NCBI GenBank assembly: GCA_964247055.1
Contig: OZ176052.1
Span: forward strand, 4,960,001 to 5,024,000
Direction: 5' to 3'
Source of the DNA: Paragordius varius
Lineage: Eukaryota; Animalia; Nematomorpha
Length of the DNA: 64,000 nt
Shown here: one piece after another, positions 16,031-52,071 of the stretch
How positions within the stretch are numbered: the stretch's first letter is position 1
Layout of the letters: every line of letters starts with the position of its first letter
Notes under the pieces: generated by a model
Databases searched by the model: none
Told to the model about the DNA's origin: nothing
What the model saw: the letters and a program-made list of their open reading frames with translations, nothing else
Translations under genes and position numbers: made by a program

Positions 16031-17326
16031 ATGACTTCACTCTCGTATCAACTACAAAAATTGCGACAGCCCCTAAATACTATTTTTAAGCCCGATGATA
16101 GGCAGAAGCCATCTATATTATTTGACAAGAAAGAGGCTGCCAGCTTAGATCGTGACATATTTTTTTCATTAGGTTTATACATAATTATAATTAGGTGTCA
16201 ATGGCCTTCAAGAATTGCAAGCTTTGGATGCTAGTTTTGAAGAATATGAAGATATACTTTTTTCTGAGGAAAATAAAAATTTTGAACGAATAATCGAAAC
16301 TAAGGCTGTAAACGATGAGATAAATGATGCGATTAATAAGTTTTTAATAACTCTTTCGCCTTATTTGCTAATTAAACCGTCTTTGCAAACCATTGAATGG
16401 CTACTTCACAGGTTAAATTTATTCTATATATTATAGATATCATATTCATATTTTAAATATGGATGGAATAATGCTATGTTCTCTGCCATACCATGATACA
16501 AATTATTTTGTCAAAATCATTCAAACATTTAATTTGGCTTCCAAAGCCGATCAACGAAATAAATGGTCCTGGCTTTTACAATTACAAAATAAAGGCTCGC
16601 CGCTTTCTAACTTGGATCTTTGCAAGCAAATGTGTGCAGATTCCATTTTTTTAAAATTCGTTTTATCCATGCCAGAAAAATTCATCAAAGTATATTTTGT
16701 TGTTCATTTCTTTATTGTGCATAATCTTGCTATTTTATTTTAATTATCAATTTACAAATAATTTTTTATCTCAGATTTTGTCAAATAATAATCACCGTTA
16801 AAGGCACACATAAACGGTAAATATATTCTGTCATTATTCAGATTAAAGACTTTTAATCATTTTTATTTAGTAAACCCATTTATTATTATTTTTTAAAAGT
16901 TTGATAGCTAGCCGTTTCATAAGAAAAATAATAACTTTCACTGATGTTTTTAAAAGTATGACTGTAAAACTTATTGACTTGTCAAATTATCTATATTTAC
17001 CATTTACAATTCAAATTTACTCTTAAACAATTCAAATTTACCCTCTAACGATATTCACCCTAAAAATAACGTGTTTAAGATTAAAAATTACTTTTATTTT
17101 TTATAAAATATGAAATTCTGTTTAAATTTAATATAATGCTGAAAAATAATAAACTATGTGCCAAAAATTTATTTCATATTAATGATGAGTTATATTAGCT
17201 CAAAAACGCGTAATTTATTTTTAGGGTGAATTTGAATTGTTCAAGGGTGAATTTGAATTGTTCAAGGGTGAATTTGAATTGTTTGAGGGTGAATTAATTG
17301 TTTTTGTAATTTAAAATGTAAATGGT

Positions 17327-17361
<35 letters not shown>

Positions 17362-20300
17362 CTATAAAACATAAAAAAGTTTATTAAATATATAATTTAT
17401 GAAGGTCCATGGATCAGATAACCCTAAGCTAAAAACTCTTTTCGGGTTTTATGCCTCATCAATGATAGGGTTTATTCAAATGGCTGTTCTGCAGGAAAAC
17501 TCGATTAGTGCCATGGCACCCTGTCTGGAGAAAGGTTTGAAATCACAAGATACTTTGTACATTCTTTCAACCTATGCCATTATTACCACGTTATCACAAA
17601 AAATTCAATTAACTGATGAATTTTGGCAATCAATCACTAAATTGATTTGCAAGGTAGTGAGATTTTTTTGGTTTTATTAAAATTATGAAGACAACCATAT
17701 TTTTGTATATTTTAGATTTTAAATATATCATATCGTTTTGGTTGGGTGCAAAAGGTTATTCACAATAATAATCATTTAGATTATTACAATTTTTAAAGAT
17801 CAAAAATTATTTCTTAGTTTTTTGTCTTCATAATTTTTGCGTTTATTATATGTATACAACTCTTTTATTTTAAGACGTAAATTAAATATTAATTAAAATG
17901 GAAAATTCTATAATTATGAATATATATTAATAGTCGGTTCTTTAATTTGCTTTATAAATTATACTAAATAATGGCTTATTGATGTTTTTATTATAACAGA
18001 ATTTGAATTGGAAATTGATCGATCACGCCATAAAATGCATTTTGAACATTGCTACCTTTCAAGATTCACAACAAATTTTTAATCGGGAGTAAATAATTTT
18101 CGATTTTTATATTAAATATTTTAAAGTTAATAAAAATTTATGTCAATCTGTATTTTTTATATTTTTTTGATTATTAATTTAGAAGTTTAGAAGCGTTATG
18201 GTATAATGCACCCCCCGAAAACCTAGCTTTGTTATATGACACGATTAGCGTTTGTAGTGAAAAAATTGATACATCTCCTCTTATTTGTAAACTCTTGCTT
18301 TGTAGTTTTAATCGCATGTTGGATATCGTTAAATCCTCGTATACTGATGTTATAAACAACAGCAATACAAATTCTAAATCCGATTTTAAAAGCATTTGCC
18401 AATCCATTTTAAATTTTATTTCTTCTCAACCATTGTCTATTTTTGCATGCTCTGTTCCTACAAGTGTAAAAGTTAATTTGAATCGAAAACGTAAAAAGAA
18501 AAGTAATACTGCCGTAAATGATGTATTGTCATCCAATGAAACTATGGATGTCGCAACTTTTACAATTAGGTATATTGGTTTTTTAATTTTTTTAATGAAT
18601 ATTTTTTTTTATTAAACTTTATACTTGTAAACAATACTATATTAATTGTTAATATATAGGAAACTCATAGACATCTACCTGAAAATCCACTCTAAAATTA
18701 TTCCCATTACACAAAGTAACCTTTCAAATGATGATGAATTAATTATACCATCAACAACTATTACATTAAAATTAATTTGCAAACAATTTGGTAAAATGTT
18801 AGGCACGCTTGATGCCTTATTCCCTGATACGGTGGAAAGTGTTTTAAACCATTATCTTAAACGTAAAAAGCACCATACTAACGATAAAAAACATTCTGGT
18901 CCTCTTGAAAAAATTATGACGCTCCTTACCTCGCCTAAATATAAGGTTTTTATCGATAATATCTATGTATAAAATATTGTTGCATGTCACAAGATATTAA
19001 ATTTGTTTTGTTTCCTCATTTGATTTATGGTAAAATCGTGAGAGTATTTTAATTAAAAGTATACAACTATGCATAATACAAGTTTTTAAAGTGTAAAGAA
19101 ATAAGTTTACGCATATATTTTTTAACCATGCTTATTTTTGTTTATCACTTTTAGATTATGGAGACGTCAGAAACTACTCATCCTGAAAATCCACTGAATG
19201 CGAGATTTCAAGAAGCAACGAAATTAATGTAATAGATTTTTTTATGAAATCATTGTTAATTGATTGATTAAATGTAAAATAAAACGTTTTATTATTGTAA
19301 ATTAGAAAATTACGATGAAAAGTATATGGCTAAATTTTTTTATAACCTATATATCTAAATTTTTATATATAAGAATAAAGTTTTTAACAAACTATTATAT
19401 GAAAAATTCTTATGTTGAAAATTATATGCCTATTTTTTAAACATATATTTTCATATAGCGAAAAATTAGATCTATGTCTAAAAGAGCTATTGGAGCCGAC
19501 CCTTGCAATATATAATGTTGCTAATGACATAATCCGATGTATTATGGATTTATTACCATATTTATACGCAAATGATAAAAACACCAACACTGATTATACT
19601 AACGTAGCCAATAAATTCATTCAATCAACCTTTTATCAGACGCACCCTATTATGCAAGGATTGCGTGAAAGTATAAACGTTTAAATGCTTTTTAGCTTAA
19701 TATGGCAAATATATTTCGTAAAATTGCTAATCTTTTATTTAACATTTCTAATCATTAAGGTAAATGGTCAACTCTCCTAACTACAAACCCTTCTAAAATC
19801 AATCCGACACAATGTAACTCGATCTTTACTCAAACATTTGCATCAAGTTTTATGAAATCCTTAGCAAAAAAAGAAATTTTTGAAATATTTTTACCCCAAT
19901 TTGTTGCCGATTTAAAGCATGCATGTTGTGCCATTTTTGATAACTTTTTTGCTCAAGAAAATTTTGATATGGACAAATTAACCACCATTTATAATCATAT
20001 TGAATTACTGAAACATTTATATGGATTATTAAATCAAGAATCTACTTTGCATGTTGAAAATTATGAAAATATTATTTTGACTTCATTGAACACCATTAGT
20101 CAAAGATTGTTGACCCTAATGTATAAATGGAAGTTTTGGGGTCACAAATTTAAAGTAATGATTTTACAATTTTATTTTCGTTTTCAATTTAATCCATTTT
20201 TAAATTAAATATTTACTATTAGAACATGTCTGTGGATACTCTTTACAAAAATGCATCCAGTCTGTACAATCAATTATTTGTTGAACATTTGTCGAATAAC

Positions 20301-23300
20301 AAAACTGACAATACCGAAAATCCTAAAGATGATGATAGTGATGGAAATATTGAAAAATCATCTCAACATGTTAATGAATTAGCAATACAAAAAATGTTAA
20401 TTGTTAATTTGTCCCAAATAATGGATATTATGGCTCAAAATACTTTTGATAAAAGTTTTTTTCCTTTAGAAATTATAACTTCGGGCCTTCAACATGACAC
20501 AACTCAGGATGAATTGAATCATTTAAAATGTGAACTCATTTATCAAATGTACAAGTTTTTAACGATTAAAGCAATACATGCCAATGTCAAAGGCATTAAT
20601 GAAATTGATTCGAATATCGAAGAGTTTAATTTGTTCTCTTGGATGTTTAAACATATATTTTTGGAGGTAAATTTTTTTGTGTAGATTTTTTTCTGTTGGT
20701 GTTGAAATCAATTTTTAGGACTTTTATTAAATAAGAGCGATATATCTTTTATAGTTTTATAAATTTATACATGTAATCAAACGTTTTAGATATTATTTAT
20801 GCAATACTTTTACAAATAAAATATATTTAAAATAATATTCATATATTTGGTTTTGGTTTAGAAATTAATTTTTGCGTCTTCGTCTGATATTCAACAAAAA
20901 ACATCAAGTATTCTTTCCTTTTCGCTATTCATATACACATATACTATGGATAAGAATGTGCATTCTCCGGAATCAAATAGACTTTTAATGCTTGTCACCA
21001 ATCATAACCTCTTCAAACTTTTGAATGATATTTCAAATCTTGATGGATTTGATTGGGAATTACGTATATATATGTTTTTTTTACATAATAATTAAAGAAA
21101 ATAGTCGTCGATTATTTGGAAATATATTTTTGTCAAAATTGTTAACATATTTTGAATGTTGTTGAAAATAATAAGAATTTAACCGTTTTGCTTTTGTAAC
21201 TTTCTTTTAATAGACATACGATTGCTTCTCAAAATATTTGATAAAACATTAGTATTATTTCAACTTTTACCTGTTTAAATTGTTATACATATTGCCATAG
21301 TTTTGAAATACATTTTGGTACAATTTATGTCACCCGATCATACAATACGTCTTTCTCTGCTGAAACATTTGCAAAGTTTTATTTCCTGCATCCCAAATCT
21401 CAACATTAATGAGAAAGCAGTCTTGAACGAAAGTTACAGCAGCGATAAAAGTCAGAAACGCTTAACATTTGAACAATTTACCAATTTTGCGAAATATGCT
21501 ATAGAAAACGAGGATAAAATAACGACAGAAGAAAATGGCATCTGTGAAGTAACTTATATTATTTAAATTAATCCATAAAAGTTAAGCAATTACTCCTTAA
21601 ACGAGTATAATCATGTAATAATTCAACAATACTTTAAAAGATATTTATATTTATATGCCTATTTTTTATATAAACATTTAAGGTACGATTATGTCTTATT
21701 TTGATATAGGTTGCCAAAATCTTACTAACTAATCGAGCGACTGAACATGCCCTAGCGAAAAAAGCAGCAAAACATCTATTTTTGCATCTCAAGAAAAGTT
21801 TTGCTTTATATTTTGAAAACAATCCATCCCAGTTTAACCGTAATGTTATGCTTTTGAATGCGAAACTCATGGGATTAGGTTCAAGGCTAACTAATGATCA
21901 GGTTTTTTTTACAACAAATTCAATTAATTTCTTTTTTAAATTATTCATTATTTCTCTGTTTTTAGTGGTACCTTGAATCATTTTTAATCCCTACCTGTAA
22001 TGCCGTGTGGAAAAACATAAAAACTACTGCGATTACAACAGATGATATAAGCTCTTATCCTAACTTACATGACGATAAGTGTCTTTATATGTTAACACAA
22101 TCGTTACAATGTGTAATGCGACACTTGGGTCATTCCCTAACCCATTTAAATAATGGGGACATGGGTGGCCTACTACCAGATAAAAAAATAGGAAAAACTT
22201 GTGAACTATTTGACTCTTTACTGAAAACCATAAATGAAATTATTGGCACATCTTTAACAATGTCTAATCAACCAATGCTTGAACATGATGAAAAGATGCG
22301 TAGGCGATTAATTATGATGTTTATGCAGTGCATATGTGATTCCACGGTATATTTATATTATTGAATACATTTTTTACCTAATAATACAAAGTTTTTTGTT
22401 ATGAAGTTTTAAATACGGACGAATTTGATTCATGATTATTTATTTTATTTTTTATATGTTAATTTTAATTTTTTTTTAGTTTTTATACCCATTATCAAAA
22501 TTTGCTTTGACTATTGATTCAAGCAATCAAGGATCGATTTCAAACTCAAATATCACCGCCAATATATCCTATCAAACAAAAATTACTTTTTTCATACACG
22601 TGCTAAAAATGGCTAATGTTTCATGTTCTTCTACAATAACGTCTGCACAAAATAATTATAGTGTTGGTGGTGGTGTTTTAACGCCACAATTTTTGTCGAA
22701 ACTCAAGTTGCGTAAAATTTTGATTAATTTGGTTTGGAATGAAACCAAACATTTTACATCTTTTGCTTCATTTTTCATTGGAAAAATATTTGGTTTAACC
22801 TCTGACATGGCTATTACGCTGGCTCGACGCAATTTTATGACAACTTATGATACCAGTAACATCAACAATAATGATAAAGGTTGGTTGAATTTTTTACCAT
22901 TTTTTTTGCAAAGATTATATATGACTTAAAAACTTTTTTCTATTAAAGTTAAAATACATACAATCAACCTGATTTAATGTTTTCTTCGTTATATGATGAT
23001 TTTTTTTGTTTTAGTGTAAGAGGTATTATATTAATGAGATTCGTATTAACGTCGTGAATAATGAAGGAAATAAAAATAAATTTATTAAAGACTCAAATTT
23101 TCGCCCAATGGCATCATCAGGAGTTGTTAAAAGAAAAAACTTTAAAATAAAGTACAACAAAGAAATTAATGTTTTTAGTTTTTAGATTTCATGCCGCAAT
23201 TAACCTATTTTTTCGACTCCTCATTTAAATTTTCCTTGCGAATCATCATTTAAATAAATTACAATTACTCAGTTTCAACATCATACACAATTCATCCATT

Positions 23301-26300
23301 TTTGTAAAAAGGCACAAATTGTTTAATTCAAAAATCCGTTGAGGGAGATAGATAAATTTTCTGTTGTTAGGCATTTTATAATGTATACTTAAACAAACGA
23401 AATTCGAAATTTAATCGAGATTAACTGTGATATTTATGTGTTTGAGATCATTATAATAAAATCAACGCAGATTTTTATTTCTTCTCTTGGTTTTAATTTT
23501 TTTCCACTAAGGTCCCCCAATTTATACGATATATCGAACCTCTAATTTTTTGTCTTTACCCCAATTTCTCGATACTCTATTTTTTTAGAATAATTCTTAA
23601 TTTATGCTAAAGCAGATCATTACAAAGCTTCTTTTCCAGCGTCAAAAGAGAATTTTTTTTAAAAAAAATCATTATAGTTATTTTTTGGCTATGAATATAA
23701 TTTAAATAAAAAATGCAAGTCTAGATATAGTTAACATATTCTAGCTATCTCAAAGTACAAGTTGGCAGATAAGCATTTAACTCACTCATTATAAAACCGA
23801 CTCATAAGGGTTTGAGCATAGATTGGATACAAATATAGTCAGCAGTAAACTTAAAATTATTGTACCCGGAAAATCCAGATTTTTAATTCCTTCTACTTAT
23901 GAAATAATGAACTCTTTTGAAAAGTTATAAAAAATTCTAATGCTTCCCTTGAAAATTAAAAAAAAACACTAACGACTAATTGTTCATTAATTTAATAAAA
24001 ATTATGGATAAAAAATGCCATTGCATAGCTACTTGTTTACTTTTAAAATCTTAATTAGGAATAAGGTAGTCCTATAATAAAACAGGAAAAATTGATAACA
24101 TTTTTTTAAAAAATTTGTGTGACTTATACAAATCAAGTAAATAAAAAGATAAATAAATCTACAATATCAATCGAACAATTAGGGCATTTGAAAATTAACT
24201 ATATCATTTGTTTTGGAAAATATTTTATATAACTTTTCATATATTTCTTTATTATTGTAGATTTATGGGAATCTTTTTTGTCCGTTTTAACCGATACAAT
24301 TTTAAAGACGTCAAATACCGAGACCGAAATTCAATATTTAGAATACATTCTCGAATTATTATACCAAGTTGCCTGTTCAAAAATTACAACGGCCAATTCA
24401 TTTATAAGCCTTAAAACATTATCTTTCCTTCAATCTATCATACCACCCATTTTTATTCTTTTAGATTGGTAAGAATTTTAATCATTAATTTACGGGTTAT
24501 AAAGCTTTGATAATTTAGTAATTTATTGTCAAAATTATTATCCCTAAATTTACCACATATTCATACTTGATATACTAGCATAAACGATAATTTACCCGGC
24601 GCCGACGACGAAAACTCATCAAAACCAATTATCCAAACACAAGATATGATTCTATTACAAAGACTCTGCCTTAAAATTCTACTTTCCTCGGTAGAACCAC
24701 TACTTTGCTTGAATGCTAATACACCAAGCAAGGTGATGCACGATAATTCTGACCATTGCATAAAATCTATTACGCTACTTATTCGTCATTCATTTCAAAT
24801 TGATACGTTGATTAAAATCCTCTTTTATATTTGCTGCTCTACCCCTAAATATGATACGCAAAAAATGGATATTAACAGCGGAAATTTAATAATGTGCCAA
24901 ATTAATAATTTCAATATTGATGTAACATACATCCGTCAATGCATTATACATATTTTGGCCTGGGTTGCCCCCGTATTCGGTGAAACATTGGTTCACAGCG
25001 TTTTCTCACTATTTACATTTATGGGAAAAACGGACATTCAAACGAGATTCGAGGATGAAAATGCAGTCATCAAGTATATTGACTTGGATTATTGCGTTTT
25101 TTTTTCAGAATTGAAAGCGGAATAATTTTAGTTGTTAAGGTTTTTGCCAATTAAAAAGGGTTACGTTATTTTGAAGTTTAAAAAAATGTTTTTTTTTCCT
25201 ATCTTTCTAACACCTTTAATCGTAATGATGGCGGCCTCTCTTTTATTTAATCTATGTATTTTTTTTTCAAAATTATCAGGAAAAAATGTAATGATAATAA
25301 ATTTTTTAAATTGAATGTCAACTTTTTTTGCCCATTTATTCACACTGGATCCAAATACTATCTTTGCATTTAAAAAAGAGAACCGGTAGAATCGAAACCA
25401 TTCAGAAATTATGTTTTTTGGATTTTTTTCAACAAAACTATGTATCTTGGGCTTATTATGCATTTTTGTTTTCAGGAGTAAAATTACCGATCAATTGGAA
25501 ATTGATAATGCGTACAGCTTTGAAACATTGGACAGTGTCATAGATATATTGATCCCTGCCTGCATAAATCAAGTTTTTTATAAATCAATAATTATACATA
25601 TAAGTCTTTTATATTTGTCAGTTTTAGTGTGAATCTACCTATCGATTGATAATTTTGATTACAATTATATTTCTTTTTAATTTCATATAGGCAGTTGTGT
25701 CCCAGAATTTGGCAAACATCAGTTTTGAAGACTTCACAAAAGCTTTGTTAAAGGAATCTGTAAAATATCTTTTGTGCTTTACGGATGCATTTGAACATAT
25801 ACCTTCCCACCGACGGATTCCTATATACTCAAATCTTTTAATAGTTTTGTCCGATAATATAACAGCCCAAGAAAAGTTAATTAAACGAAACCATATAGAT
25901 ATGGTGGGATCTCCTGATGAAAATACATTTGCACAAAGGGTTTATTATAATAAATATAAAACTGAATATTATTTTTAAACTGGTTGTATTCTATTTTACG
26001 ATTGCAGTATAATAAAAATACAGTGCTAGTTTTTCCTTAAATATGGATAGTATTTTGAATAAAGACTATTTTAAGCCATATTATTTTTTTACCTGTTGAT
26101 GTAAAACAAACAAAATATATTTTTATACATATCTTATAGAGTTCATTGCCAGACATGTTTTTACGATGGGCTTACCTTTTGCACTACCGACAACCTAATA
26201 ACAATAACATACTACCACAAGAAGTATATTATACTTTTTCCGATTCTTGTTTTTATAACATAAATCTATTTCAAACATTTTATATTAATATAAATCAATT

Positions 26301-26306
26301 ACAAAA

Positions 26307-26350
<44 letters not shown>

Positions 26351-29300
26351 TTTACAGTTCAAATCATCCTTGAACAATTCAAATTCACCCTCTTTCGTTT
26401 AAAATTATAATACTGAAAAATTAATAAAATATAAGAATATATTTCAATGATGAGTTTAGCTTGAAAACACGTAATTTATTTTTAATTTTGAATTGTTCGA
26501 GGGTGAATTTGAATTGTTTAAGGTTGAATTTGAATTGTAAATTGAATATATGTTATATATAGAATGTTTCATCGACTGCCAACGCTCATTGTATTGATTG
26601 CATAATAAACTTATGGGAATTACTAGTTTCACATATGCCTATCAGTGAGAACACTCTGGATTATGACTCAAAGTCTAAGTGTAAAATAGATTTTATGTAC
26701 CACGCCCTATCTAAACTCTTGTTTTATTTCATATTAAATACACATCGCACATGCAATACTACTTATGATATGGAGACAACAATGTCTTTAGAAGGTATTC
26801 CTTATATGACATTTTTTGATGCCTTTTTAAGGATTAATTCCATGTATCAAAAATTTAAATTTCAAATAATTTAATATATTTTTCATGTATAGATAATCTT
26901 GAATATACGGTTCTTAATGAGTTTGGACTTGTACCTGAAGCCAATCCTTTTAATCAAAATAGTTTTGGTGTGCTTATATATTTGGTTCATGTGTTGAAAG
27001 CAATCGTTTCCTCCATGAACCATGATATAGTTAACACAATTGATAAAACAAATAAGACATGGGTAATATATTTTAATGCATGTATGTTAGACAGCTATCA
27101 AACTATTTCTAGATTAGATATTATAAAATTTATTAATTATTAGAATTTTTTAGTTTTCTAATGAAAGTGTTGAAATTAACGCTATCGTAAATCTTTTATA
27201 TGATTTAATAGGAATAAAATATGATTTTTTTGAAAACTTCTTTGTATCAAAGACGGAATTTAAAACTATTTTTCCTTATAATATATGATTAGCATTAAAC
27301 CGTTAATACTACATTATCTGTTTGTGTATTACCTGTTTCAATAGCATTAGAAACTTTTTGTTATATTTTATACGTATAAATTATATGTTAATTTTATTAT
27401 TATGTGGGGAAATTTTTTAAGATATTAAATTTAAACCCGATATGAACAGAATCATGAATTTTAACTTAAATTATAGTTTTTTCCGTATCAATGATTTATC
27501 TTTAGCCTTGTCGATTGGATATATATAATGTTGAAACATTTGTAAAATGGAAAGTGTTATCATCGGTTAATATTTTATATTGATTTTCAAACTATGCAAT
27601 ATTTTAAGACTATAATATAATTATAACTTGTGTACTATTCATTAGTTATTATCATAATTATTACCTATTTATAATTTATTTATATCAAAATAATCTTCGG
27701 ATGCCACCAATATACATTTTGTTCTATATATGAAACTTTCTTAGATTAAATTGGTGAAACAATTGATATCCACATTACAACAAACATACTTCCTAATCCA
27801 TGAAAACTATTCAAACTCAATCGTAATAACTAAAGAAAAAAATTTGGCTCGGGACCAAAAACATCTTTTGATACAAATACTAACAATGCTTAAAACCATA
27901 TCTTTATGGATTAAACCGGCTACATTTGTTAAAATTATGTTGAAACTTTTTACGTCTGACAAAGACGAAAAAACGGTAATTTTATTTTTTAGGATTAACT
28001 CTCTTACTTTTTTATATGGTAAATTGTATTGTTTATATCATATAAATAATTGGAATTTTTTTGTTTTAAATATAAGTTTTTTCCCAAAAAATATACAATA
28101 AACCTTTTTTTCTTTTAGAGTTTATCTCCTGTTCAACAATATAATAGCCTTGATTTGCTTAATCATGTGTTTTCCACTAAAAGATACAATTCTCCTGATA
28201 TAAATATATATATTTCAGATTCTGAGGTAATTCTATATTTATCTTACTTAATAATCTTGTATAACTATATTTTTTGTAAATTAAAATACCTGATGATCAT
28301 TTTTAAGAATAAACAATAATCACAATGATTTACATATGCTTTATTCCAGTGTTTTCCAAAAAGGGGGACGCGAAAATTTTGAAAAATTCATTTAAATTAT
28401 AAAACTAGAAACAAATTGAAAGTTAATCTGGTGCAAATAATTAATGTTTATCCCCGATATGGAAAAGGTATTTCCAGAATTTCGCATCTGAGATCTTGAT
28501 TATGCTTTTTATAATATTATAATAATTTTTTTTCTCGGAGAAGTTGGTAGGGGGGCAAGAATTTCTTTTCACTTTGGTGGGGCGTGAACAAAAAATGGTT
28601 GGGAACCACTTAAAATTAAATATACAATTACCCAAAATTTTTATACTTAAAAAAATAAGATATTTGAATTATTTCTTATTTTCAGTTTTTAACCGTTGAT
28701 TATGATAAATCTTATTAATTTAGTGTAATATATTCTTTCTTCATTAATCTTCTTTATGATTTAAGCATCATTTGTATGTTAACAAACTTCTCCCATTTTT
28801 GATGGAAAAACTATCACACATTAATAATACAAGCTTGTGCGCCCTGCAAAGTAATGACATAAACGCACTCACAAATTATTCAAAACCGCAAATCAATGAT
28901 TTAGAATTTGATGTGGCATGCGCTCAATTATGTATTGTTACAATCAAACGTGTATTACAGTTATGTGGTATCGATAACGTTAATAATAATATGAATAAAA
29001 ATACGAAGAAAAATATCAATATTATCCCAAAAGCCAACCAATTAAAGGCTGAAATGATAGAAAAGGTATGTATTACATATATTTATATGTTTTAATTTAT
29101 CATTTTTTTTGAATATGGATATAAAGTGAGAAATTGTTTACATTGACTTTTTAATGTTTATAATGATGATTTGTGCGGTTTTTTATAGTTAGTTTTTAGA
29201 ATTTATATTAAATCATCCATAAGTCAATTTAATTGCAATTTATTTGTCTTTTTAGATCATTACCACAATATACGACACTCTTAAACGCCTTAATGAACTT

Positions 29301-32300
29301 AAATCAAAGGGATTTGATTCGGCACAAAATAACCCGGAAGTATTAGAAAATGTGATAAACAAATTAAAATCACTTCATTTATCTACCCTGCTGTGTTGTG
29401 CTGAATTGTTTTCCCATTGGCCATATCACGAGAAAATCTTATCTAATATACCATTGTATTTGGAGCCAACTATAGATTTACTAAGCCTTAATACACAGGA
29501 TGCTACAAAACAAGAACCGATTGCTACGCTAAAATTAGATAAAGTTTAATTAATAAATTATTATAAGGCAAAATATTATATATTTTCAAAAATGATTCAA
29601 TATTTTAGCTATTTATCACATTAATTTTATCAAATTTACCCATTGTAAAAGATAATAATACGTATCGAAACCTTTGGATATAGTGTAGTTTATTAATTTT
29701 ACAAAAATTCAATATATATCTTTTTTTTGTCTATACAGGAGAAATTATTACGATTAGAATGTGGAATATCATCCCTCGAAAAATATTTTTATCCCACAAT
29801 CAATCGGATTGCACAAGATGGGTCAATTGTTAACAATAATCCAGCTATCAACATTTTGTTAGGATCAGAAAATTATTTATCCTCGATCATTGTAAAGGTA
29901 AAAATGCCCAAATGCAATATTTTTAATGCTTAAAATTTTTTAATCTTCGTAATTTATATTATTATCGTGATTATAGTAATTTAGGATATATATTTAACCC
30001 AATACAATATATTTAATGACCACAGATATGTCAGGTAGGATTAGCTATTAGGAGTATTGCCAATTCGAATGCTGTGGAATTACGATTACAACGCTTAATT
30101 GTACTTCTCACCACTAAAGTTAGGATAGATTCTGTTCTGATGATAAAGGGATTTACTGAAGCCTTTGACACTTTATTAAAAAATGCAAGCTTTCACAATC
30201 AAAACGGAGAGGACAAAATCATGGAATGCCCTATCATATATTTCAAATTATTGAATAGGTATAATTCAAAATTTATATTTTGTACTTGTTGTTTAAATCT
30301 TATGGTATTTACATTTGATTTATTTTTGCATTTAATTTATTTTGAATATATATAGATATGTGAAATACAATGTTTTATTCAATAAATCCTTGTCATCTAG
30401 TCAAAATGAGACTTGCCAACAATTACAAATCGTTTTGGAGGCTTCATTTATAAATCAATGGTTAAGAATAGAATCGTTTATTTATGTAATATTTTCTCTT
30501 TTTTCTATATTATATATAAATAAATTTATTTTATAATGATTATGTATATATACTTTTTTAGTGCTTAGCAGAAAAGAAAGTTGTAAAATATATAACACAC
30601 CTTTTGACTGATACCCTGTTGCTATATTGTATGAAATTATCTGAAGAAAAATTATCATCATTTTTATCGAAAGTAAGATAATCAAATTTTACTATCGAAA
30701 CCATAAAAAAATTTCGAATTCAAAATGTAAATTTTTAAGTTTAAATCGCATCTACCAATAGCCTTTTTTTTAATAGAAAAATAATATTTTTATCAAAGTT
30801 GTTTATATATATTAGCTTTATTGTTGTTTTTACATTATTGTTAATTATGTATATTTTTCATATTTTTTTCCAAGAGAAAAACAAACATTAAAGTTTTTTA
30901 GCGACAAAATATATAAGAATTTAAGCATATTGTCCACCTTTTTATTTTATGAATTTTCTCGGAAATAGAACAAAAACCGGTTTAATTCTTTTAAATACTT
31001 TATTTATAACTAAATAGAAAAAAAGGATTATTGTTTTTGCAAAATACATAAGTGTCAAATATATTGATTAGCTATCAATCTGGTGGTCTTCAGAATCTGA
31101 ATGTCAAGAAAAAAGCGAACAACAATTATTTGACGCACAGATATCAACTTGGAAAGATAATATAATGCTTTCATTTTGCCTTAGATTGATTCAACATTTG
31201 GATAAATTGTTTTTACTTTTCTCGCATGTTTGGACGGAACCCTTGCAAGCCATGTTAGAAGGTAAAGTTAACTAAAGTTGTAAATAAAATTTAATTAAAC
31301 TATATAATTCTTTTATAACAATATTTTTTGTTGAGGCTCAACAGTTATGTTTAAATATTTATTGCATCTGAGTTCAGTTTTTCAAAAAAACGAATAATAA
31401 TTGTCGTTGTTTTTAAATTAAAAATGATGTATATGTATGTTTATATTAAATTATCTCCTATTCGATATAAAAATTTAGCATTATAAATATTTCTCTTTTG
31501 CATTAGCTTTGCCAAACATTAAAGATGAGGGAACCAACCAATTGCTCATTTTAATTGATATCTATGGTGCAATTCTTAATTTGGAAGAAAAAAATAATAT
31601 GTCAGAAACGAATACCTCAATAAATGAGATCCCATCTTTACCTCGATTTTTGACAAAAATTTATATTCAAGACATCCTTTGGACCTGTATTAAATTAGTA
31701 AGTTATTAACGTATATTCTTATTGGATAATTGTAGTTGGTCACATAAATATTGACTTTTTCTATTATATATTATCTTTATAAACATTATCAGTAACTCTT
31801 TGGCTAGGGCTCATTATCCGCTGCTTGACCTTTTATTGCTAATCTTTATTTTGATATTTTATATGATAATATTTTAGCCACTAAGTAGTGAAAAGGAATA
31901 TTTACATTTTTGCGGTCTGAAAAATATATTAAAATCGTAAATTAATAAATAGATTAATAATGGTTCGACGAGATGTCCGTAAGTTTAAGGTTTTTCGTCT
32001 AATTAGCATGAGTTGATTAATTTTAAATTCTTCTTATTTAAGAGCTTATTTGGGATTATGTCACACAAATATTAATATTTAACTAGTGTGTTACTACTAA
32101 TTTGTTTAAATATATATTGTTAATTTCCGATTCAATTATGTTTTTACCATGAATGACTCCATTTATGAGCAGGTGGAATGATAGACAATTTTGACCTCTT
32201 CAAATCAAAATTTTAATATTTTTTATTTAATAGTTCGATTCGATTAAAGAATATGAAAGTGAGTCATTAGATAAACTCTATTGTTTGATCGCTTCAATGA

Positions 32301-34490: not shown

Positions 34491-34530
<40 letters not shown>
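34432..34530. mobile_element. Possible single end of a related TA-associated element
   Basis: Tandem TTGAAATGTTCA(A)GGAC..CTC units ending in AAATGGTAT and then (TA)n, the same terminal motif as the foldback MITEs; the partner end was not found. Confidence 0.35.
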
Positions 34531-34531
<1 letters not shown>

Positions 34532-34589
34532 CCAACTTATTTAATTTGATGGAACCTCTAAATTAATTTTTTGGATCTATCATTTGAAG

Positions 34590-35090: not shown

Positions 35091-35302
35091 TTTTACACTA
35101 GTGTAAAGCAATATCAATGTACATTATCTATTGTTTTGGAGGAAGCGAAATACTTCATTCGAAATATTATAATATATTATTATAACTACATTTAAAAAGC
35201 AAAACAATACTTATATTATTTAATTTATCGATGTGGGTTCCAAAAGTCTCAAATATTAGCTCCGCTCAAAAATTGGCTAGTTTTCTTAAAATAAAAGCAA
35301 AA

Positions 35303-36337
35303 ATGCCAAGATTGTGTGTTGACATTTATATGCTAGATTTGGGTACTCACACCCCAGGCCAAACGCTTTTTATGACCCTGAACTATCCATACATTATATC
35401 ATTGATTTTGATATATATATATATATATAGAACTGATTTCTGCCACTGGTTAAATGATAGGGATACCCCATACTCAGGAACTATAAACCGCTTTCACGGC
35501 GCGTTTAACAGTGAAACTGGCGAGTTTAAAGTAATCTGGTACTGTAATTTTTTTGGAATTTACTTAAAAATACACTTAATTGAAGCGATCACTTAAAAAT
35601 AGTTCATTAATGATTTCCTAAAATTAAACAGCATATAGCCCAATTTGCTTAGGATTTTATTAAAACAATGTTTAATTATATCGGGTCGATGATTTAAAAC
35701 TGTATTTAATTTCAAATCGGAAATATTTATTATTTTTTATTGGACCTTTAAATGTAGTTATATACCACCGGGCTAAAATTTAAATATATTATGAAAAATG
35801 TTTTTAGCATTGGACCAAATTTAAAAATATGCTTAAGCCTTTTAGGTGCATGATAAAAATCTTTTCTAAAAAAGGTAAAATAGAATGAAATCCTCATCTG
35901 AAACTTTTTGACCATTTTTTACTTTATTCGTTAACACTTTATGACCTTTTGGAGGTAGTTTTATAGCCCAGCGATCGAAAGACTATCTGAAAAAGTATTT
36001 AAGTATTGGGTTAAACTTGAATATATGCTTTCTTTAGCCATTGGCGAATAAGAAATTTCTTTTTTAAAAATGTAAAAATGTAAACAGATCCTCATTTGTC
36101 GCAATTTTTTCTAGAAATTATTTAATCGCTAATGCAACAGGCAAATTCATGTATATTATGGTTAGAAAACGTATAATTTACTACTTTGAGGTTTTACCAG
36201 AAAAAATGGATTTTGATTTAAAACTTCACACATATTTGAGTTATTTTTACAAAACTACTGAAAGAAACGGGCCCAATTTAAATTTATGGTTCTTTTCGAA
36301 AAAATTATATAAATATGCCAAAATGTATAAAAATTAG
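35303..36337 (+). CDS. Small hypothetical protein (about 100-120 aa), 3-5 exons; 5' structure ambiguous
   Basis: An exon with clear splice signals at 35431-35530 (TDFCHWLNDRDTPYSGTINRFHGAFNSETGEFK) joins in frame to 36141-36170 (ANSCILWLEN), then across a 20-nt GT-AG intron (36171-36190) to VLPEKMDFDLKLHTYLSYFYK...KMYKN-TAG. Start is either ATG 35231 or 35303. No homology recognised. Confidence 0.5.
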
Positions 36338-37392: not shown

Positions 37393-39204
37393 ATGAAAAA
37401 GGTTTATTACCAATCTTCAAGTAATTATATAATAATAAACAGATAATACGCCTGAATTTAATCAAAATCGAAAAACCTCTCCCGAAAGATTTACATCCAA
37501 ATTAAATCCGGATGCTAAAGAATTTAATCCTTTCGGAAATGTAATATATATTTTATATATAAAGGTTAAGAAACTAAGTTTGGAAGATATCGAAGGTATG
37601 ATTCATTAATATGTTAGATAAACTGCGAACTTATCTCAACGATATGACTATTGATCCCGGCACATTTTCTGAGCGAGCTCTAACTATTTATACTCTTATC
37701 AGATGCCAACCAGATATTTTACAACATCTCTTGCGACTAATCATTTCATATGTAAATATTATTAAAATAATATATAGATGAATGGTAGTCAAAGCTGTTT
37801 ATATTGTGGAGCTAAAATATTAAATTATTTGATTAATGAATTACCTATCACACAAAGTCAAAATTTAATGAATATTTTGGAAAATGAGTAAATTTAAGGG
37901 TAATATATAGAATCGGAAATATGTATGATTCCACAATTAACTTAGATGTCAATCAAAAGGAAAACGTTAAAAAATTAATTGATTTAACCTATTTAATAGC
38001 TGAACTATTTTGTAGGATTGAGGTAAATCGTTTAAAATGATACGATAGACAAATATAAATCAAGCCCTATGCTTAATTTTATTAATTTATTTATTAAAAT
38101 TTAACATATGGACCCATTCTTTTCTTTTAAAAGGTAAAACCAATAATCATTGTTTCATTCTGTAAACTGGTGAAACATAGTTATTTATTGATATAAGAGT
38201 GAAGCTAAAACCAAACACCGATTAAGGCTTAACAACGTTTTATATTTTCATTTCTTTAAAATTAAATATAACTTAATGATTTTTTCGAAACGAAAAATAT
38301 TATATAATCCAAATTCCTTTTTTTATACTTCTTAAAATTTATAAACAATTTTATGTATTTGCATCCTTATATGTCATTAATACGTTTACACATCGTCAAT
38401 AAATTATCTATTTTATAAGCCCATTAAAGGGAAACCTATAAAAGTGAAAAACCCAATGTTTTACGAAGCACTCATGGAATTACTTGAAAAAATGATGGTT
38501 CCGCCATATATTGAAGATTTTCTAATAAATTCTACAAAAATTTTGAAGGTAAAACCTAGTGAATTAATTATATGTAGTATAATGCATACAAATATTATAA
38601 TAATATCAAAATTTCAAATTTTCTGTCACCTTTTTTTAGTTATCTGGGCACGAAATCACGCAGTTTGAAGAACAAACAAAGCCCCCACCTGACGGTAACA
38701 CTCCATTTAGACCGTCACGCTTCAACAATTATATGGCAAAAGTGCGAGAACTTGTACTTAGTGAAGGCATGATTCAAAGGTTGCTATAATTTTATCTATC
38801 CATTTATACAGGGATGTCTAACACAAATTTCTACGCGTGCTGCTTTGATAATTATTAGTTTTTCAATTTATTTTAAGCCCAATTTTGGATGATGTAATCT
38901 ATGAAAATCGTAAAATTTTGATGAATTAGCAATTTATTAATTTTAACATTTTCAGAGCACTTTTTCGACCTTAACAAAGCGTTTAAGGTAATATTGACAG
39001 TGGTTGACCTTACCTCATTGAGGCGCCTTTTTTAATTTAACATTGGCTAAAAAAGATTTGTTGTTTACCGATCATCATGCGTTTTTCCCCTTTTTATAAT
39101 GGTCTTATTTTTCGTTATAATTGTTCCCAATAGTTTTTGGTAGCCCCATGATGAACCAAAAACAAAAATAAATAATATAATATTTTTAAATACCCATGTT
39201 ATTA

Positions 39205-44945: not shown

Positions 44946-47900
44946 TTACATATCATTTCCAGGATAAATGTAAATGACAGGTATATAATTCTTGTAAATT
45001 ATATTGGCGTTTGATTTACCATTTTTATCACTATTTTCGAGCGGTGTAATTTCATTACCATAGTAGCAAAATATATCAGGTTTTGGGATTTGAAGTTTAC
45101 CCAAAGTCAAGGGTAAAAAGTTGTATGTGTAATCTACGTATCGGCCCGGTCCAATCACAAAAGAGTTTGATTTTAAATCACTTGTTTGAGATTCCTCAAC
45201 AGAATTGTTGTTTATAATTCCTTTACATCCTGCAAATATTAGGGTTGGTTGTTCCGACATACTAATTTGACATTTTACATGCTCAATCAGCGATGTATTA
45301 TACAATCGATAGGTTATATTTATCATATCATGAATGCGAAACCATGACGGTTTTACAATTTTTTTATTATCATAGCTAGTAAACGTAACGCTATTTTCTT
45401 TTTTTGGTCGTGTATCTGGTTCAATGGTTTGTTCAAATGTTTTATTGCCCAATTGAAATGTATTGTTAATTAAAATGTCGACTTCGACAGTAGATCTATT
45501 ATTTAAGCTATCGTCTATAATATCACATTTCAAATCAAAATAGGCATTTGTCAAAAATTGTTTTCCATTATTCTTATTATTATTATCGTTTGTTTCTCGA
45601 TTAATCTTAATTTTTTGCCAACCAATCTGAACATAACCAAAATTTCGAACATTTACTTTTTCTGTTAAATCAAACTTATTTAACATTAGTAAAAAAGTAA
45701 ACATTTCACCCGGGTTCAAAACGTTTGGATGAAAACAAGCTGGATATATTTCGGTAGATATTGATTGATTATTATTATTATTGCCAATAAAATTAATGGA
45801 GTTTATTGCAATGGATGAATATTTATTGTTGGCTTCAAACTTATCATAACATACGGTGTTATTGTATAAGTTTACAATAAATATGGCTGGCCAATGATTT
45901 ATATGAATTTGTTTTTGCAGAGAAGACTCCTTCATCGGTATAGTTTGCGGTGTTAAATGTGATGTGAATGTTTGCTGCTGAAATGTTAATTTAAACTGTT
46001 TTAAAAGGTTAAATCCATCAATCTGCGATTCCCACATGTAAGGAACATTAATTGGATTGTTGGTATTTAATTTGTCATAACTTAAACGTACAAGAAATTT
46101 GTATTGTTTTACGGTCCAGTCTGTATTACAAACATGGTCGGCATCATCATTCATCACATACATAATTTGATATGGATGTTCCATTTTCATACGCATTTTA
46201 AAACCAAGTTGTTTTGGCATCTCAGTAAATGATGCGAAACCAGCCGTATATGACGAGGAACAAGAAGACGTATTTTCAACGGGTTCCAATGTTAAATCAT
46301 AATTAGAAAAAATGAATTCAGGAAATACATTTAAATTTTTATCAGTATGCCTATTGATCGGGAAACATTCAATTTTTATTTGAATGTTTGTAATATGTTG
46401 TTCCAATACTAAATTCTCCGTTGGCATTATCTTTAAAGACCAATCATTCTCTTCATCTACCAAGACATTGGGTGTTTTGTTAGAAAGATTTTCAGAATTA
46501 CTACTGAATTTAAGAGTGAAATCTTGGCCAAAAGGAAATAAATTATTACTATCTGCTGGCTTAAAATTAAATGGAAGGAATAATAGCATTTTATTGGATG
46601 AATGGTTTAATTCATTGTTCACCAAATTGCAATATTGAATTGGGTAATTTTTTGCTAGAACACCACCAATGTCTGATAAATTCCATGTCAAAGTCAATGG
46701 TAAATATTTTAAGGCATTACCGTGTTTGGTCATAACTTCATCTTTCACGATTATTTTTATACCCGTAATTTTTAGGATACCTAACAAATCAATAGCATTA
46801 TTTATGGTGTGTAATTCTGATATTGCATTTTGAGAACTTAAAATTTTCCATATGTGTAAACCGTTCAGCGCAATTAACTCAATTTGTTCTTCCCTATTAA
46901 AAATGTATTCCCAGTGCCCCTTAAGGTTATTAACGCATTTCTGGTCGGATGACAATCGGGTAGAGTAATTACGCAAAACTGTGCTAAGAGATGTATGATT
47001 TTCTGCTTGCAGTTTGACAAAGTCAATTTCGTAATTAATTATAAGTTTTCCTATCATTTGTATAAGGGCATTTGGGTAAAAGTCTAGCGTCTATATAATA
47101 CAAAAAAATATATATTAAAATTTCGATAATATGGGAAAGGATGACATATAGTTAATTTTTTCAATTTTTACTATTATTAGCCAAAAAATATCTTTGCTGC
47201 ATATGCTATTTGGCAATAATTATTGAAAAACTAGCAATGTATACTAACTCATACTCTATAAAAAACAAAGGATTAAAATTCTTTGATAAAAAAATACTTA
47301 TAAGTTTGTTTTTTTAACAAATTTATTTTTACTGTCCTTATACCATTTGGTCTTTAAATGAAAATTCGCACGCAATATCAAAATCATTGTATGCCATTTG
47401 TGAGACGTGGATTGAAAGCTTAAAGTTTTGACATTGATCGGATAATTCGTCCATGAGAATACAAATTGGGTTAGGTTGTGGGACTAAAGGGCAGATCTGA
47501 TTATTTGTGTGAAACATCGTATTTTTATATGATTCCATTAATGATTTCCACTGGGCATTTATAGACGTATTTTCACTCGATAGGATACCTATTTCTAATG
47601 TCATCAAAAGGGTTTTTTAAATAAAATCAAATTATTATTCAAAAATGTGCATGATTCAATTTCGGTGTGGTTGTTTAGAACAAAAATAATAGATTTCAAT
47701 GTTTTTTTTTATAAAAAAAATAACCTAAATCTCGCTATTACTTTTTGCTAATATAACTAAAATTGAATTTTAACCATAATTTTGTGTCAATGGCAATACA
47801 TCAAGAAAAACAACAATTATAATAAATTATTATTTAAAAAATTTAGATTTCACCAACCTGAAAAATCAAAATTTGGAGGGGATCCACTTAAAACATTCGT

Positions 47901-50900
47901 TAAATAAGTGTAAATGAGAGTTAATTTAACATTTTTTGCATTTGCGTCCACCAAACCCAAGAGTTCAAACGAGCATCGGATAAAAAGGGGCAAATTGATT
48001 GAGAGGATAGCGCATCTTAAAGAAAATGATATATCTAATTTCTGGGATTAACTTATATCTAATAATTTTTTATTATAATGTTATAAAAGCTAGTTAATTA
48101 TATTATAAAAACATACAATACTTGTATAGCATTTCAATTAATAGAACATAAATTTTATTCCAAGTGGAATGTTTCAATGACTCCAAAATTGAACATAATA
48201 AGTTTATGCAGTTCGACAAATCACCAACGCGAAAATATTGTTCTGCTAATTGGTATTTAAGCAATCTTATCAAATGCTGACTATGGAATTCGTTGAAAAT
48301 GGTTATCGCCCTAAGGAAAAAGTCATAAAAATAATATTAGTAGAATCGTATCCCTTTTCTGATCAATTTACTATATTTATTATTTTTTGCCATAAAAATC
48401 ATAAATTTATCGAATTTAAAAACGAGAACATGTCCCTACTTTCATGTTATTAATTAAAATATAATTGTACACGATTAAACAAATATAGCTACGACTATTG
48501 GTTAGATAATTAATATTTTTTACTCATTTAAATTTTGAATGATGATGGATGTCATATCAAATTTCAACACATTTAATTGCAAAGCTAATGTACCACTCTT
48601 TTCACGTTGCATGTCAATATGTTCGGCATTAAGATTCCCTGGTCGCCATGGCCTCTGTCCATAAAACTCCATTTTATCGATTCCTTTTAAACATAAAAAA
48701 CACAATATACGCCATACAAAAGGTAAAAACTGAAAGCTCTTTTATAAACCTTGTTATCTCCAACATAAACCATATAAGTACAATTATAAATTTATGGAGT
48801 GTTACAAATTTATATTTCTATTCCTTAATTTGCAATTTATATTGTTAAATGCAATTAACAGTAAATAAACGATAAAAGAATGTGGATCCATAAAACAAAT
48901 TTTTAAGATAAAAAATTATTTAAAATTTTTATAGAAGAAAAATAAGTAAAAACAATTTTTTTATTATGACTTTCTTTCATTAATACGTATCAGCATGGGC
49001 ATGTTTAAGCATTTATAGGTTCTTAATACAATTCATTACAATAATGAAATAAAAAAATAAACATTAAAATTACTTGCATCGATTCTTTATTTAAAAGTTA
49101 AATTTTTCCAAAGGTATAAATACCATCAACTTTGTAACTTTATTATTTGAAAAAGACAGTCATTTACTGTCGAAATATGATATAATTATTTCATTTCTTT
49201 ACGCTGTTGTTTAACTAAACGTAAATTTATTCCTAACCAGATAAAAGATCCATAGTTTGCGGATATAAAACATTGCTAGCTAATAAATTCTTATGTTCCT
49301 CTTGCCATTGCTGTATTAATTTGGCTTGTTGGGCAGCTTGCATAAAATAATGTCCAGGATGATAAACGGTTTCCATAGAGCGCATCCCCTGTTTACTCAT
49401 GGTTTTGTATAGCTTAGCAAACACTTCGAATCTAAATATACAATGGCATCCATGTATGTTTTAAACTGATTTTTTTAGAGAAATCGATTTAATGCTAATA
49501 TGTTATTTTTTTATTTAAGAGGAGAAAAATATTTTGGGTAAGTTTTGCTTTAACATTTATTTATTGATAATTTAGAGATTTAATGAAAAATATGATCGTA
49601 GTAGTCATAAGATGTGATGCGATTGATATCTTGAAAATATATAAAAACTATTTTTGAAAATGCCAAATCTTACAAAACAAAAAGCAAAATGAAAATAAAA
49701 CAAAATATAGAAAATATACTGATAATATAGCCAGAAACTATTTTCAAAGTCTAAATCAGTATTCTCTTTCAAAACACTGTATTGTTCGATGTGCTTGTTG
49801 AATGCAGTTAAAGCATCTTTTATCATATTTTTGTCCAACAATATTTTACAAATCTGGCATGGAAAATATTGAAAATATAATTTTAGAATCAAATATATTT
49901 GGATTCATATATTAATATTTTTACTTTAAAATTGATTAGGGCGGAGATAATTTTGATTTCGTGTATTGTTGTTTCCGCAATTTTGACATCGGAAAGAGCT
50001 TCATAAGCTTGAATATAACTCCTAATATATACATATATATAAATAATTATTATGCGTGTTATATATATATATTTGGAGCCTAGTTTGCTCTTTTAAAAAA
50101 TTAGTTTTATGAATGATTTTTCGAAATCTGAAAGAGGATTAAACGTCATAAGCGATAAATCATTTAAAAAAATAAAATGCGCCCAAATAAAATATCAAAA
50201 TTTATCATAAGATTATAATTATATGTATAAATCATAAACTTAAATATTAGTTTAATCAAGCGTTATTAGGGTTTAGATAAAAAATTCAAACATGTTATGG
50301 ATGTGAAACATTGGCGAAACTGCAAATGAAAGTGAATAAAGATTGTTTATACATTTTTTTATAGAGATGGTATACACATAGAGCGTAAATATAATAGCTG
50401 TAAAATTATTTTTAATTTTAAGGTGTTCATACTTTGAAAAAGTATTTCTAATTTTACTGGTAGTTAAGTTAGTAAAAAATTGGCCCGCGATTAGGTATGA
50501 TTAAACTTTGACATTTTTTTTAAAAATTATATAGATGAACATTACGATCTGCTGCAACATATCATATTAATCAAATTTGAAAAGAGTTTAAATAAATATT
50601 TCATGGACAATGATAATCAGATAATGGTTTCGACTTTATAAATTATTTTAAAATTGCCAATATTATAGGTATTTGAAAATTCCTTTGAAGCATATATACA
50701 TTAAAGTAATAGTAATTTATATAATTTACAATACTTAATAGCTAAGGCAGGTTCTTGTTTCAATTCATTGAAAAATCCTATCTTGAAATGGTATCGAACC
50801 AATAAACCCTAAACGATTGTTATGCAATAACTTGATGAACGGATTTATCCAAGGCTGAAATATGGATTTTTATGTTTTTGATTTTGTCATTGTAGTAAGT

Positions 50901-52071
50901 TTGGGCAATTTCAAAAAATGCATTTTCCAATCTATTAACATATTATCACTAATTAAAATATTTTCATATTATTGAAACGCAATTAGATCTAACATAGAGA
51001 ATATCACATGCTATAACAAAACAAAAATAATGTATGGTTAAACAAGGGGTATATGCGATTTAATATCGTTCAAGATTATTTAATTTCAAAAATTTTGGTT
51101 TTTAGTTCCATGATTTTTGGTTTGGTGTTTTGCGGTTATTTTAAATTTGCAAAAAAATAATTATGTGTAGAATATAAATAAATAGCCACAAAAGTAGGTA
51201 GCTACAAAATATATTATTTACTACTTTCCCATGTAAAATTTAAAAAACAAACTTTTATGATTCAAATAAATATTAAATAAATATATAAGATTCATTGCAT
51301 TAAAGTGAAAAAATGATACAATTCCAAAAAATAATTTTTCACACAAAAATCCAATAAAAACGGGATCGAAAATTGTTTTGCTCCCATAAAAACGTTCAAA
51401 GTCAATACACAAAATTAAATATTCAAATTAAAGGTATAATTTCTACTTTAGCGTGTATCCATAAAATAAATCGGAGAATGGCAAAATAAATAAATTTTTG
51501 GATGATATGTTTAACAAATCGCAAAACTCAGAGGCTCGTTGAGACATTAAATTTTCTTCACCTTATTATAGAAGTAAAAGATATACCTGGTGGGAAATGG
51601 GAATTACTTTGTATTAAAACAACTACCAATTTGACAAATCTATTATTTAAAGTTTCTCTAAAGAATTAACGGTTTTTGTAACTTGATGATATTAAATCGT
51701 GTATTACATTCCATTTTCTTTTCATCCCATGATACATCATTCCAATCAAGTTCATAAAAAAATACTATTAAACTGGGAATGATTTCAAGATGTTTTATTA
51801 TCCAATTTCTCTTTAACATACCCTTTGGTATGTACCATTCAAAACTATTTCGCTGAAATTTACATAAGAATAATTATACCTGTGCATGAGGTGTCGGAAG
51901 CCTGTGATCCAGGGCACAAATTTTAAAATTAATCGCTAGCTGATTCTGCTTTCTGTGCATAAAATATTCCCATATAGCTTTGTGATTTGCATTATATACA
52001 ATGTCTAAACCGGTTAGATAGACAGGGATATCGGGTGGCAAAAAAAATTCCTCAGGTATATAAAAATCCAT
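44946..52071 (-). CDS. TRAPPC11: Trafficking protein particle complex subunit 11 (TRAPPIII; foie gras/gryzun), about 14 exons
   Basis: LTGLDIVYNANHKAIW, RNSFEWYIPKGMLKRNWIIKHL, FYELDWND, RLENAFFEIAQTYY, RYHFKIGFFNELKQ, EIKIISALINFKIC, HPGHYFMQAA, EFYGQRPWRPG and SLRCAIL...FELLG match recalled TRAPPC11. The last exon (47090-44946) contains the 703-aa ORF with the C-terminal Gryzun-like region (YNFLPLTLGKLQIP). Confidence 0.93.
50809..51879 (-). other. Four ultra-short introns in TRAPPC11 (27, 25, 25, 23 nt)
   Basis: 51879-51853, 51682-51658, 51586-51562, 50831-50809; each removal restores the conserved TRAPPC11 frame (the 27-nt one contains an in-frame TAA). Confidence 0.9.

Follow-up and report, generated by a model that had tools for sequence, protein, structure and literature searches.

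Probable ultra-short spliceosomal introns near the 5′ ends of genes in an AT-rich, non-compact genome of hairworm type

Eleven very short segments, all of them starting with GT and ending with AG, interrupt three genes in a 64,000 nucleotide (nt) stretch of animal DNA (hereafter, the window; positions 4960001–5024000 of contig C3 in a 110.6-Mb assembly of 44 contigs). The genes concerned are HEATR1, a PAIP1-like gene and TRAPPC11. Very probably, these are genuine spliceosomal introns of the U2 GT-AG type which have shrunk to a floor of about 22–27 nt in an AT-rich, non-compact genome of hairworm type; they are called micro-introns in the following. An earlier note on this DNA had listed twelve such introns in four genes. 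Eleven of them were located at the positions listed there, with lengths of 22–27 nt. The twelfth, an intron of 20 nt in an “orphan” gene, was not located: two scans of the 36-kb range containing the genes returned no 20-nt candidate joining convincing coding sequence, and candidate orphan open reading frames (ORFs) matched no Pfam family. The note had further proposed that the spliceosome of this lineage excises introns of about 22 nt from animal genes. The genes are indeed animal genes and the segments behave as U2-type GT-AG introns; from the genomic sequence, we infer that they are removed from the RNA and are thus absent from mature messenger RNA.

Short segments with GT and AG at their ends are abundant by chance. 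Within the 36-kb range, 755 and 869 segments of 18–32 nt were counted on the two strands, and a scan for GT..AG stretches joining two open frames gave many chance cases. Support must therefore come from coding continuity, from homology spanning the junctions and from introns shared with a relative. The chance density, about one segment per 45 nt per strand, also speaks for a rival explanation, in which the genes are decaying pseudogenes or carry assembly or insertion errors and the frames are repaired by GT..AG stretches of no significance. The evidence bearing on this rival is given with each gene below.

Intron positions shared with a relative in TRAPPC11 are the strongest support for genuine introns apart from RNA. 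The gene lies on the minus strand at 44949–52071, with its ATG at 52071. One TRAPPC11 exon was searched against 1.84 billion protein representatives, and the best homologue was a 1309 amino acid (aa) protein of the horsehair worm Gordionus sp. m RMFG-2023. Using this protein as query, tblastn detected collinear matches from 52071 to 47871 and then at 45344–44949. We mapped the Gordionus protein exactly onto the DNA of its own locus, and the junctions of the window gene were refined against the protein. At every micro-intron the query coordinates abut, and at introns 2, 3 and 5 the junction chosen is the best-scoring one. Supporting matches were obtained with the Pfam family Foie-gras_1 and with Drosophila TRAPPC11 in PDB entry 7b6h, in which residues 8–66 (exon 1) and 68–124 (exon 2) flank the 27-nt intron.

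All of introns 1–10 agree with their Gordionus counterparts in residue position and phase (10/10). The micro-introns among them are intron 1 (51853–51879, 27 nt, phase 0, containing an in-frame TAA), which in Gordionus measures 41 nt and follows residue 65; intron 2 (51658–51682, 25 nt, phase 2), measuring 717 nt after residue 121; intron 3 (51562–51586, 25 nt, phase 1), measuring 53 nt after residue 145; and intron 5 (50809–50831, 23 nt, phase 0), measuring 465 nt after residue 217. The remaining six are intron 4 (50932–51446, 515 nt, phase 2; 49 nt in Gordionus, after residue 183), intron 6 (50022–50734, 713 nt, phase 2; 186 nt), intron 7 (49854–49924, 71 nt, phase 0; 314 nt), intron 8 (49432–49719, 288 nt, phase 2; 332 nt), intron 9 (48684–49237, 554 nt, phase 1; 261 nt) and intron 10 (48311–48523, 213 nt, phase 2; 330 nt). 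Since codon and phase are the same, all four TRAPPC11 micro-introns are orthologous to ordinary introns. This agreement argues against frames patched by chance in a pseudogene or a faulty assembly, as does the homology, which runs unbroken over the junctions in both TRAPPC11 and HEATR1. Because Gordionus has introns of 41–717 nt at the same codons, the micro-introns would be descended by shrinkage from ordinary ancestral introns. The two genes are also alike in that the short class lies at the 5′ end, but the annotated floor in Gordionus is about 41–53 nt, compared with 23–27 nt here. Moreover, which intron is short differs by rank: Gordionus introns of 717 and 465 nt correspond to 25 and 23 nt in the window, whereas the Gordionus intron of 49 nt corresponds to 515 nt.

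The 3′ part of the window gene consists of a single last exon, a 714-aa ORF at 44949–47090. Taken alone, this ORF gave no matches in Pfam, in PDB or in a protein word search. Its end, a stretch of approximately 130 residues, can be aligned with the Gordionus TRAPPC11 C-terminus (z = 13 relative to shuffles) and also with the C-terminal region of TRAPPC11 of other animals. This alignment identifies the ORF (703/714 aa) as the last TRAPPC11 exon and rules out an orphan or a transposon sitting inside an intron. Apart from that C-terminal stretch, the region has diverged too far to be aligned with Gordionus. What is one 2.1-kb ORF in the window comprises four exons in Gordionus, separated by introns of 904, 84 and 505 nt, which implies either loss of 3′ introns here or a gain there. 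PAIP1 was absent from the 10 kb on either side of the Gordionus TRAPPC11 locus.

Judging by similarity and composition, the organism is an ecdysozoan animal, and its nearest sequenced relative is the nematomorph Gordionus. The searched TRAPPC11 exon is 74% identical to Gordionus, compared with at most 66% for all other matches (at most 65% among full-length ones). For the first 184 residues of the protein, identity is 60% to Gordionus vs. 41–45% to wasps, a firefly, a centipede and mammals. The guanine-plus-cytosine (GC) content of the window is 24–29% as far as approximately 56 kb, beyond which a satellite follows, and the Gordionus genome has a GC content of 26.9% (bioRxiv 10.1101/2023.06.26.546503). 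Four published hairworm assemblies measure 201–288 Mb (PMC11603191, Table 1).

In HEATR1 (also UTP10; plus strand, 16031–32634), the argument rests on homology in three different frames. Exon 1 (16031–16172) matches residues 1–46 of human HEATR1 (E = 0.0014), exon 2 (16195–16411) matches residues 47–123 (E = 9e-19), and exon 3, beginning at 16437, matches residues 121–203 (E = 2.3e-13). Since the three exons are read in three different frames, the 22-nt and the 25-nt segments between them must both go. Removal of the first (16173–16194, phase 1, GC 14%) gives the required frame shift, and reading through the second (16412–16436, phase 2) runs for 8 codons before it meets a stop. At its 5′ end, the gene is firmly established. 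Its middle exons were too diverged to be detected against solved structures, and the last block (32404–32634) has a weak match to the C-terminus of yeast Utp10 (E = 0.37); consequently, the extent to about 32.6 kb and the number of introns, at least 20, are estimated from open blocks on the plus strand. The later HEATR1 introns that we inspected are about 50–100 nt or longer. Deeper micro-intron candidates at 21349, 27404 and 30849 were rejected, as they join low-complexity junk.

According to the earlier note, the same spliceosome also handles kb-sized introns filled with transposable elements. Micro-introns do share genes with introns of 71–713 nt and probably with one of about 1.3 kb, namely a HEATR1 gap at 22930–24230 which is probably an intron. 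However, the description as filled with transposable elements is only loosely true in the window, as what the tested gap holds is a dispersed repeat of about 135 nt. More than 50 copies of this repeat (23033–23170), with 80–95% identity, are spread through the genome. The copies often occur as inverted pairs a few hundred bases apart, resembling the ends of elements of the miniature inverted-repeat transposable element type.

The PAIP1-like gene (plus strand, 37393–38789) has eight exons and seven introns and encodes a PAM2 motif and, behind it, a putative MIF4G part. PAM2 was detected in exon 2 (Pfam, E = 5e-6). The support for the junctions in this gene comes from ORF logic, from PAM2 and from chain statistics. 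The ORF containing PAM2 is closed by a stop upstream and lacks a start codon, so that it depends on a 22-nt intron (micro-intron 1, 37421–37442) as its sole link to the ATG at 37393. Three further micro-introns are forced by frame: micro-intron 3 (37596–37617, 22 nt, phase 1), where read-through stops after 4 codons; micro-intron 4 (37752–37777, 26 nt, phase 0), with a stop after 9 codons and a TAAY motif 7 nt before its end; and micro-intron 5 (37888–37910, 23 nt, phase 2), where read-through stops after a single codon. Thus, four of the five are forced by the frame or by the missing start codon. Micro-intron 2 (37541–37564, 24 nt) is a probable intron but not a forced one, being divisible by three in length and free of in-frame stops. 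The statement in the earlier note that frame or stop codons force every segment with one exception was borne out, this being the only such case; the TRAPPC11 segment 51853–51879 is also divisible by three but contains its in-frame TAA. Between micro-introns 2 and 3 lies an exon of 31 nt, and skipping it breaks the frame. Introns 6 (38023–38419, 397 nt) and 7 (38549–38639, 91 nt) are ordinary introns recognized by the exon frames and GT..AG ends. Allowing up to five micro-introns, a chain of 537 coding nt can be built in the 630-nt stretch, while 60 control pieces of the window averaged 214 and reached 428 at most. Control chains as short as these are difficult to reconcile with frames mended by chance.

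To describe traits shared by the micro-introns, 551 GT..AG segments of the same lengths from non-coding parts of the window were used as a chance set. The mean GC content is 18% in the 11 micro-introns, 31.5% in their exon flanks and 30.7% in the chance segments (Mann–Whitney, p = 3e-5), a composition so sharply unlike that of chance segments that it further argues against the pseudogene or error explanation. Base 3 is A or T in all 11. A TAAY motif with its second A 4–11 nt before the intron end is found in 8 of the 11, compared with 19% of the chance segments (binomial p = 2e-4), which puts the putative branch about 11–20 nt from the 5′ splice site. The pyrimidine fraction at −12 to −3 is 0.3–0.8, with a mean of about 0.5, i.e., a polypyrimidine tract is missing. 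In this respect, the earlier note, which saw no room for a separate branch region and polypyrimidine tract, was right about the tract; for the branch region it went too far, since a branch-like TAAY fits in eight of the 11. The signals kept would then be a minimal 5′ signal (GT and then A or T), a branch site resembling TAAY 4–11 nt before the 3′ AG with its adenosine as the presumed branch point, and the 3′ AG itself without a pyrimidine tract.

Several points weigh against reading the segments as spliced introns of a hairworm-type animal. With odds of about 0.3 matched for GC content, the enrichment of TAAY is weaker (p ~0.004), and the branch reading draws on 11 introns only, in AT-rich sequence where TAAT is common. 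No MIF4G domain was detected in single PAIP1-like exons, using PDB, Pfam, Atlas and a protein word search; to our eye the later exons resemble the MIF4G domain of human PAIP1, a likeness that the exon-by-exon searches did not confirm. The affinity to hairworms is based on one gene, TRAPPC11, together with base composition. Finally, segments may be retained or spliced inefficiently. In particular, 37541–37564 could be coding and represent eight linker residues, as it is stop-free and keeps the frame, and others might be retained in part as in microsporidia, for which inefficient splicing of very short introns has been reported in work cited in PMC13644364. Yet the GC content of 37541–37564 is 8% vs. 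30% in its flanks and its ends are GT and AG as in the forced segments, and retention of the other ten would truncate conserved proteins. On balance, we consider failed or inefficient removal of some segments unlikely. Searches of the genome for retrocopies or haplotigs lacking the micro-introns showed the loci to be single-copy in the assembly, and protein searches found no transcript-derived proteins of this species.

A length far below the presumed minimum of animal spliceosomes might suggest removal by other means, namely programmed somatic DNA elimination or a dedicated second splicing system. Of the splicing machinery, U1, U2 and U6 small nuclear RNAs (snRNAs), SF1 and a U2AF65-like gene are all present and canonical. 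U1 snRNA scores 124 bits and has an intact 5′ end (ACUUACCUG), U2 snRNA scores 177.7 bits with an intact GUAGUA branch-recognition box, and U6 snRNA is present in two copies (114 bits). The helix-hairpin domain of SF1 was found (E = 5.6e-19), and a locus like the large subunit of U2AF gave four collinear matches to the model. Nothing in these components points to lost spliceosome parts or to a second system. Besides the canonical machinery, the GT-AG ends, the U2-compatible TAAY and the orthology to ordinary introns all argue against removal without the major spliceosome, and the U12-type start GTATCC occurs in none of the 11 micro-introns. Accordingly, such alternative routes appear most improbable to us, and excision of the micro-introns would presumably be performed by the ordinary major spliceosome. 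As a side observation, at least 35 matches to U2 snRNA pass the Rfam cut-off; many of these are degenerate, and they are clustered within about 270 kb of contig C3 (C3:257000–528000, plus other clusters), and U1 copies are clustered at C6:565000–634000.

The micro-introns are concentrated at the 5′ ends of their genes. They hold ranks 1–2 in HEATR1, ranks 1–5 of 7 in the PAIP1-like gene and ranks 1, 2, 3 and 5 of at least 12 in TRAPPC11, and all 11 lie no further than about 650 coding bases from the start codon. Under a random order of introns, such placements have p ~0.005 for HEATR1, ~0.05 for the PAIP1-like gene and ~0.007 for TRAPPC11. The shortest introns of Gordionus TRAPPC11 (41, 53 and 49 nt) are likewise found at the 5′ end. 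In order to look beyond the window, eight CCT chaperonin genes on other contigs were located with Pfam Cpn60_TCP1 and their 5′ parts were read; the paralogue names are our own reading. Five of the eight open with micro-introns, nine in total and 23–36 nt long (eight of 23–29 nt and one of 36 nt): TCP1-like with one of 24 nt, CCT3-like with 27, 28 and 36 nt, CCT4-like with 25 and 26 nt, CCT6-like with 23 and 23 nt, and CCT8-like with one of 29 nt. In the other three genes, the 5′ introns measure about 50–80 nt. Profile coordinates of Cpn60_TCP1 continue across the second micro-intron in CCT4-like (2–21, then 18–53) and in CCT6-like (18–39, then 39–108), and gaps between exon-level matches indicate later CCT introns of up to hundreds of bases. 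Given these genes on other contigs, the class is genome-wide and again 5′-proximal. The recurrence of the same pattern in five CCT genes completes the case against pseudogenes, assembly errors and chance repair, an explanation which is strongly disfavoured and which we regard as very improbable.

Micro-introns are nevertheless a minority class: they make up 4 of at least 12 introns in TRAPPC11 and 2 of an estimated 20 or more in HEATR1, but 5 of 7 in the PAIP1-like gene. Neither a median intron length below 30 nt nor a predominance of ultra-short introns was found in the genes sampled (TRAPPC11, HEATR1, PAIP1-like and CCT). The micro-introns cluster near the start of the coding sequence, within its first few hundred bases, and the ordinary introns that follow measure from 60 nt up to about 1 kb. 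It is quite possible, although we propose it tentatively and with distinctly less confidence than the intron reading itself, that hairworm-type animals independently evolved a discrete class of 22–30-nt introns, limited to the cap-proximal few hundred bases, by intron shrinkage in a non-compact genome.

Other features of the window were noted in passing. An open block at 14350–15168 on the minus strand (272 aa), just upstream of HEATR1 and on the opposite strand, is without a Pfam match. Between HEATR1 and the PAIP1-like gene, open blocks of 70–136 aa occur at 33300–35100 (minus strand) and 35186–36334 (plus strand); by eye they look like transposon remnants, none has a Pfam match, and the “orphan” of the earlier note may lie there. 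A satellite of 42-nt units occupies 56567–64000 with 178 copies (91% match) and continues past the window end, degenerate copies starting from about 55900. It has a GC content of 37% and is strongly strand-asymmetric (GC skew −0.73, AT skew −0.39).

Very short introns are well known outside the animals: those of Paramecium measure about 25 nt, those of Stentor 15–16 nt and those of the Bigelowiella nucleomorph 18–21 nt. Ciliate and nucleomorph micro-introns resemble the present ones in being GT-AG introns of 15–30 nt excised by a canonical-looking spliceosome, but these lineages are not animals, their whole genomes are affected, and a position-dependent class is unreported for them. Animals were thought to lack introns below 30 nt (PMC13644364, Mol Biol Evol, September 2026). 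The same study describes myxobolid myxozoans with median intron lengths of 22–27 nt, found, outside Myxozoa, only Dicyema japonicum to be similar among 51 animal genomes, and predicts further lineages with such introns. Thus, the view in the earlier note that among animals such introns are reported mainly for dicyemids needs to be widened: dicyemids are published, but so are myxobolids (PMC13644364). In both groups, the intron signals are reduced to GTa...AG with A residues ahead of the AG, U2 and U2AF are canonical, and the introns have been linked to genome compaction (PMC13644364). In the full-text literature on Nematomorpha or hairworms and introns, no such introns were found described, a Current Biology paper on Acutogordius and Nectonema lying outside this search. 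Introns go unmentioned in two preprints, one on the Gordionus genome and one comparing hairworms.

The comparison with these two animal groups shows likeness in the introns and differences in their setting. According to PMC13644364, with reference to Lu 2019 and Zverkov 2019, Dicyema japonicum has GT-AG introns of about 20–30 nt with GTa...AG and A residues shortly before the AG, without a pyrimidine tract, as is the case here. Nearly all introns of dicyemids are ultra-short (median below 30 nt), whereas here they form a 5′ minority class beside introns ranging from 60 nt up to about 1 kb; furthermore, dicyemids are an unrelated lineage, the present organism being an ecdysozoan near hairworms, with satellites and dispersed repeats in its genome. 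The myxobolids Henneguya salminicola, Thelohanellus kitauei and Myxobolus rasmusseni share with it the intron size, the location at positions where relatives have longer introns, a canonical U2 snRNA and U2AF, a putative branch A near the AG, an AT-rich genome and a parasitic life (PMC13644364). However, the shift to short lengths concerns the entire intron distribution of myxobolids, whose genomes are compact (PMC13644364), while here the classes are split and position-biased. Loss of the polypyrimidine tract is common to the micro-introns of all three (for dicyemids and myxobolids, PMC13644364).

After dicyemids and myxobolids, both of them parasitic, the present organism would be the third animal lineage with introns below 30 nt. 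If true, a third unrelated lineage would mean that animal spliceosomes have a more flexible lower length limit than presumed, one not tied to genome compaction; the grounds for this significance are the position of the organism as an ecdysozoan near horsehair worms, the coexistence with introns of hundreds of bases in one gene, and the 5′ clustering. If, in addition, the discrete cap-proximal class were confirmed, the minimal length of animal introns would depend on their position in the transcript, for instance if the cap-binding complex or the polymerase in early elongation lent assistance, and compaction would not be the driver. In such genomes, gene finders with a minimum intron length of about 30–40 nt will annotate many genes wrongly at their 5′ ends; such errors could be part of the reason for the low completeness scores and the apparent gene losses that have been reported in hairworms.

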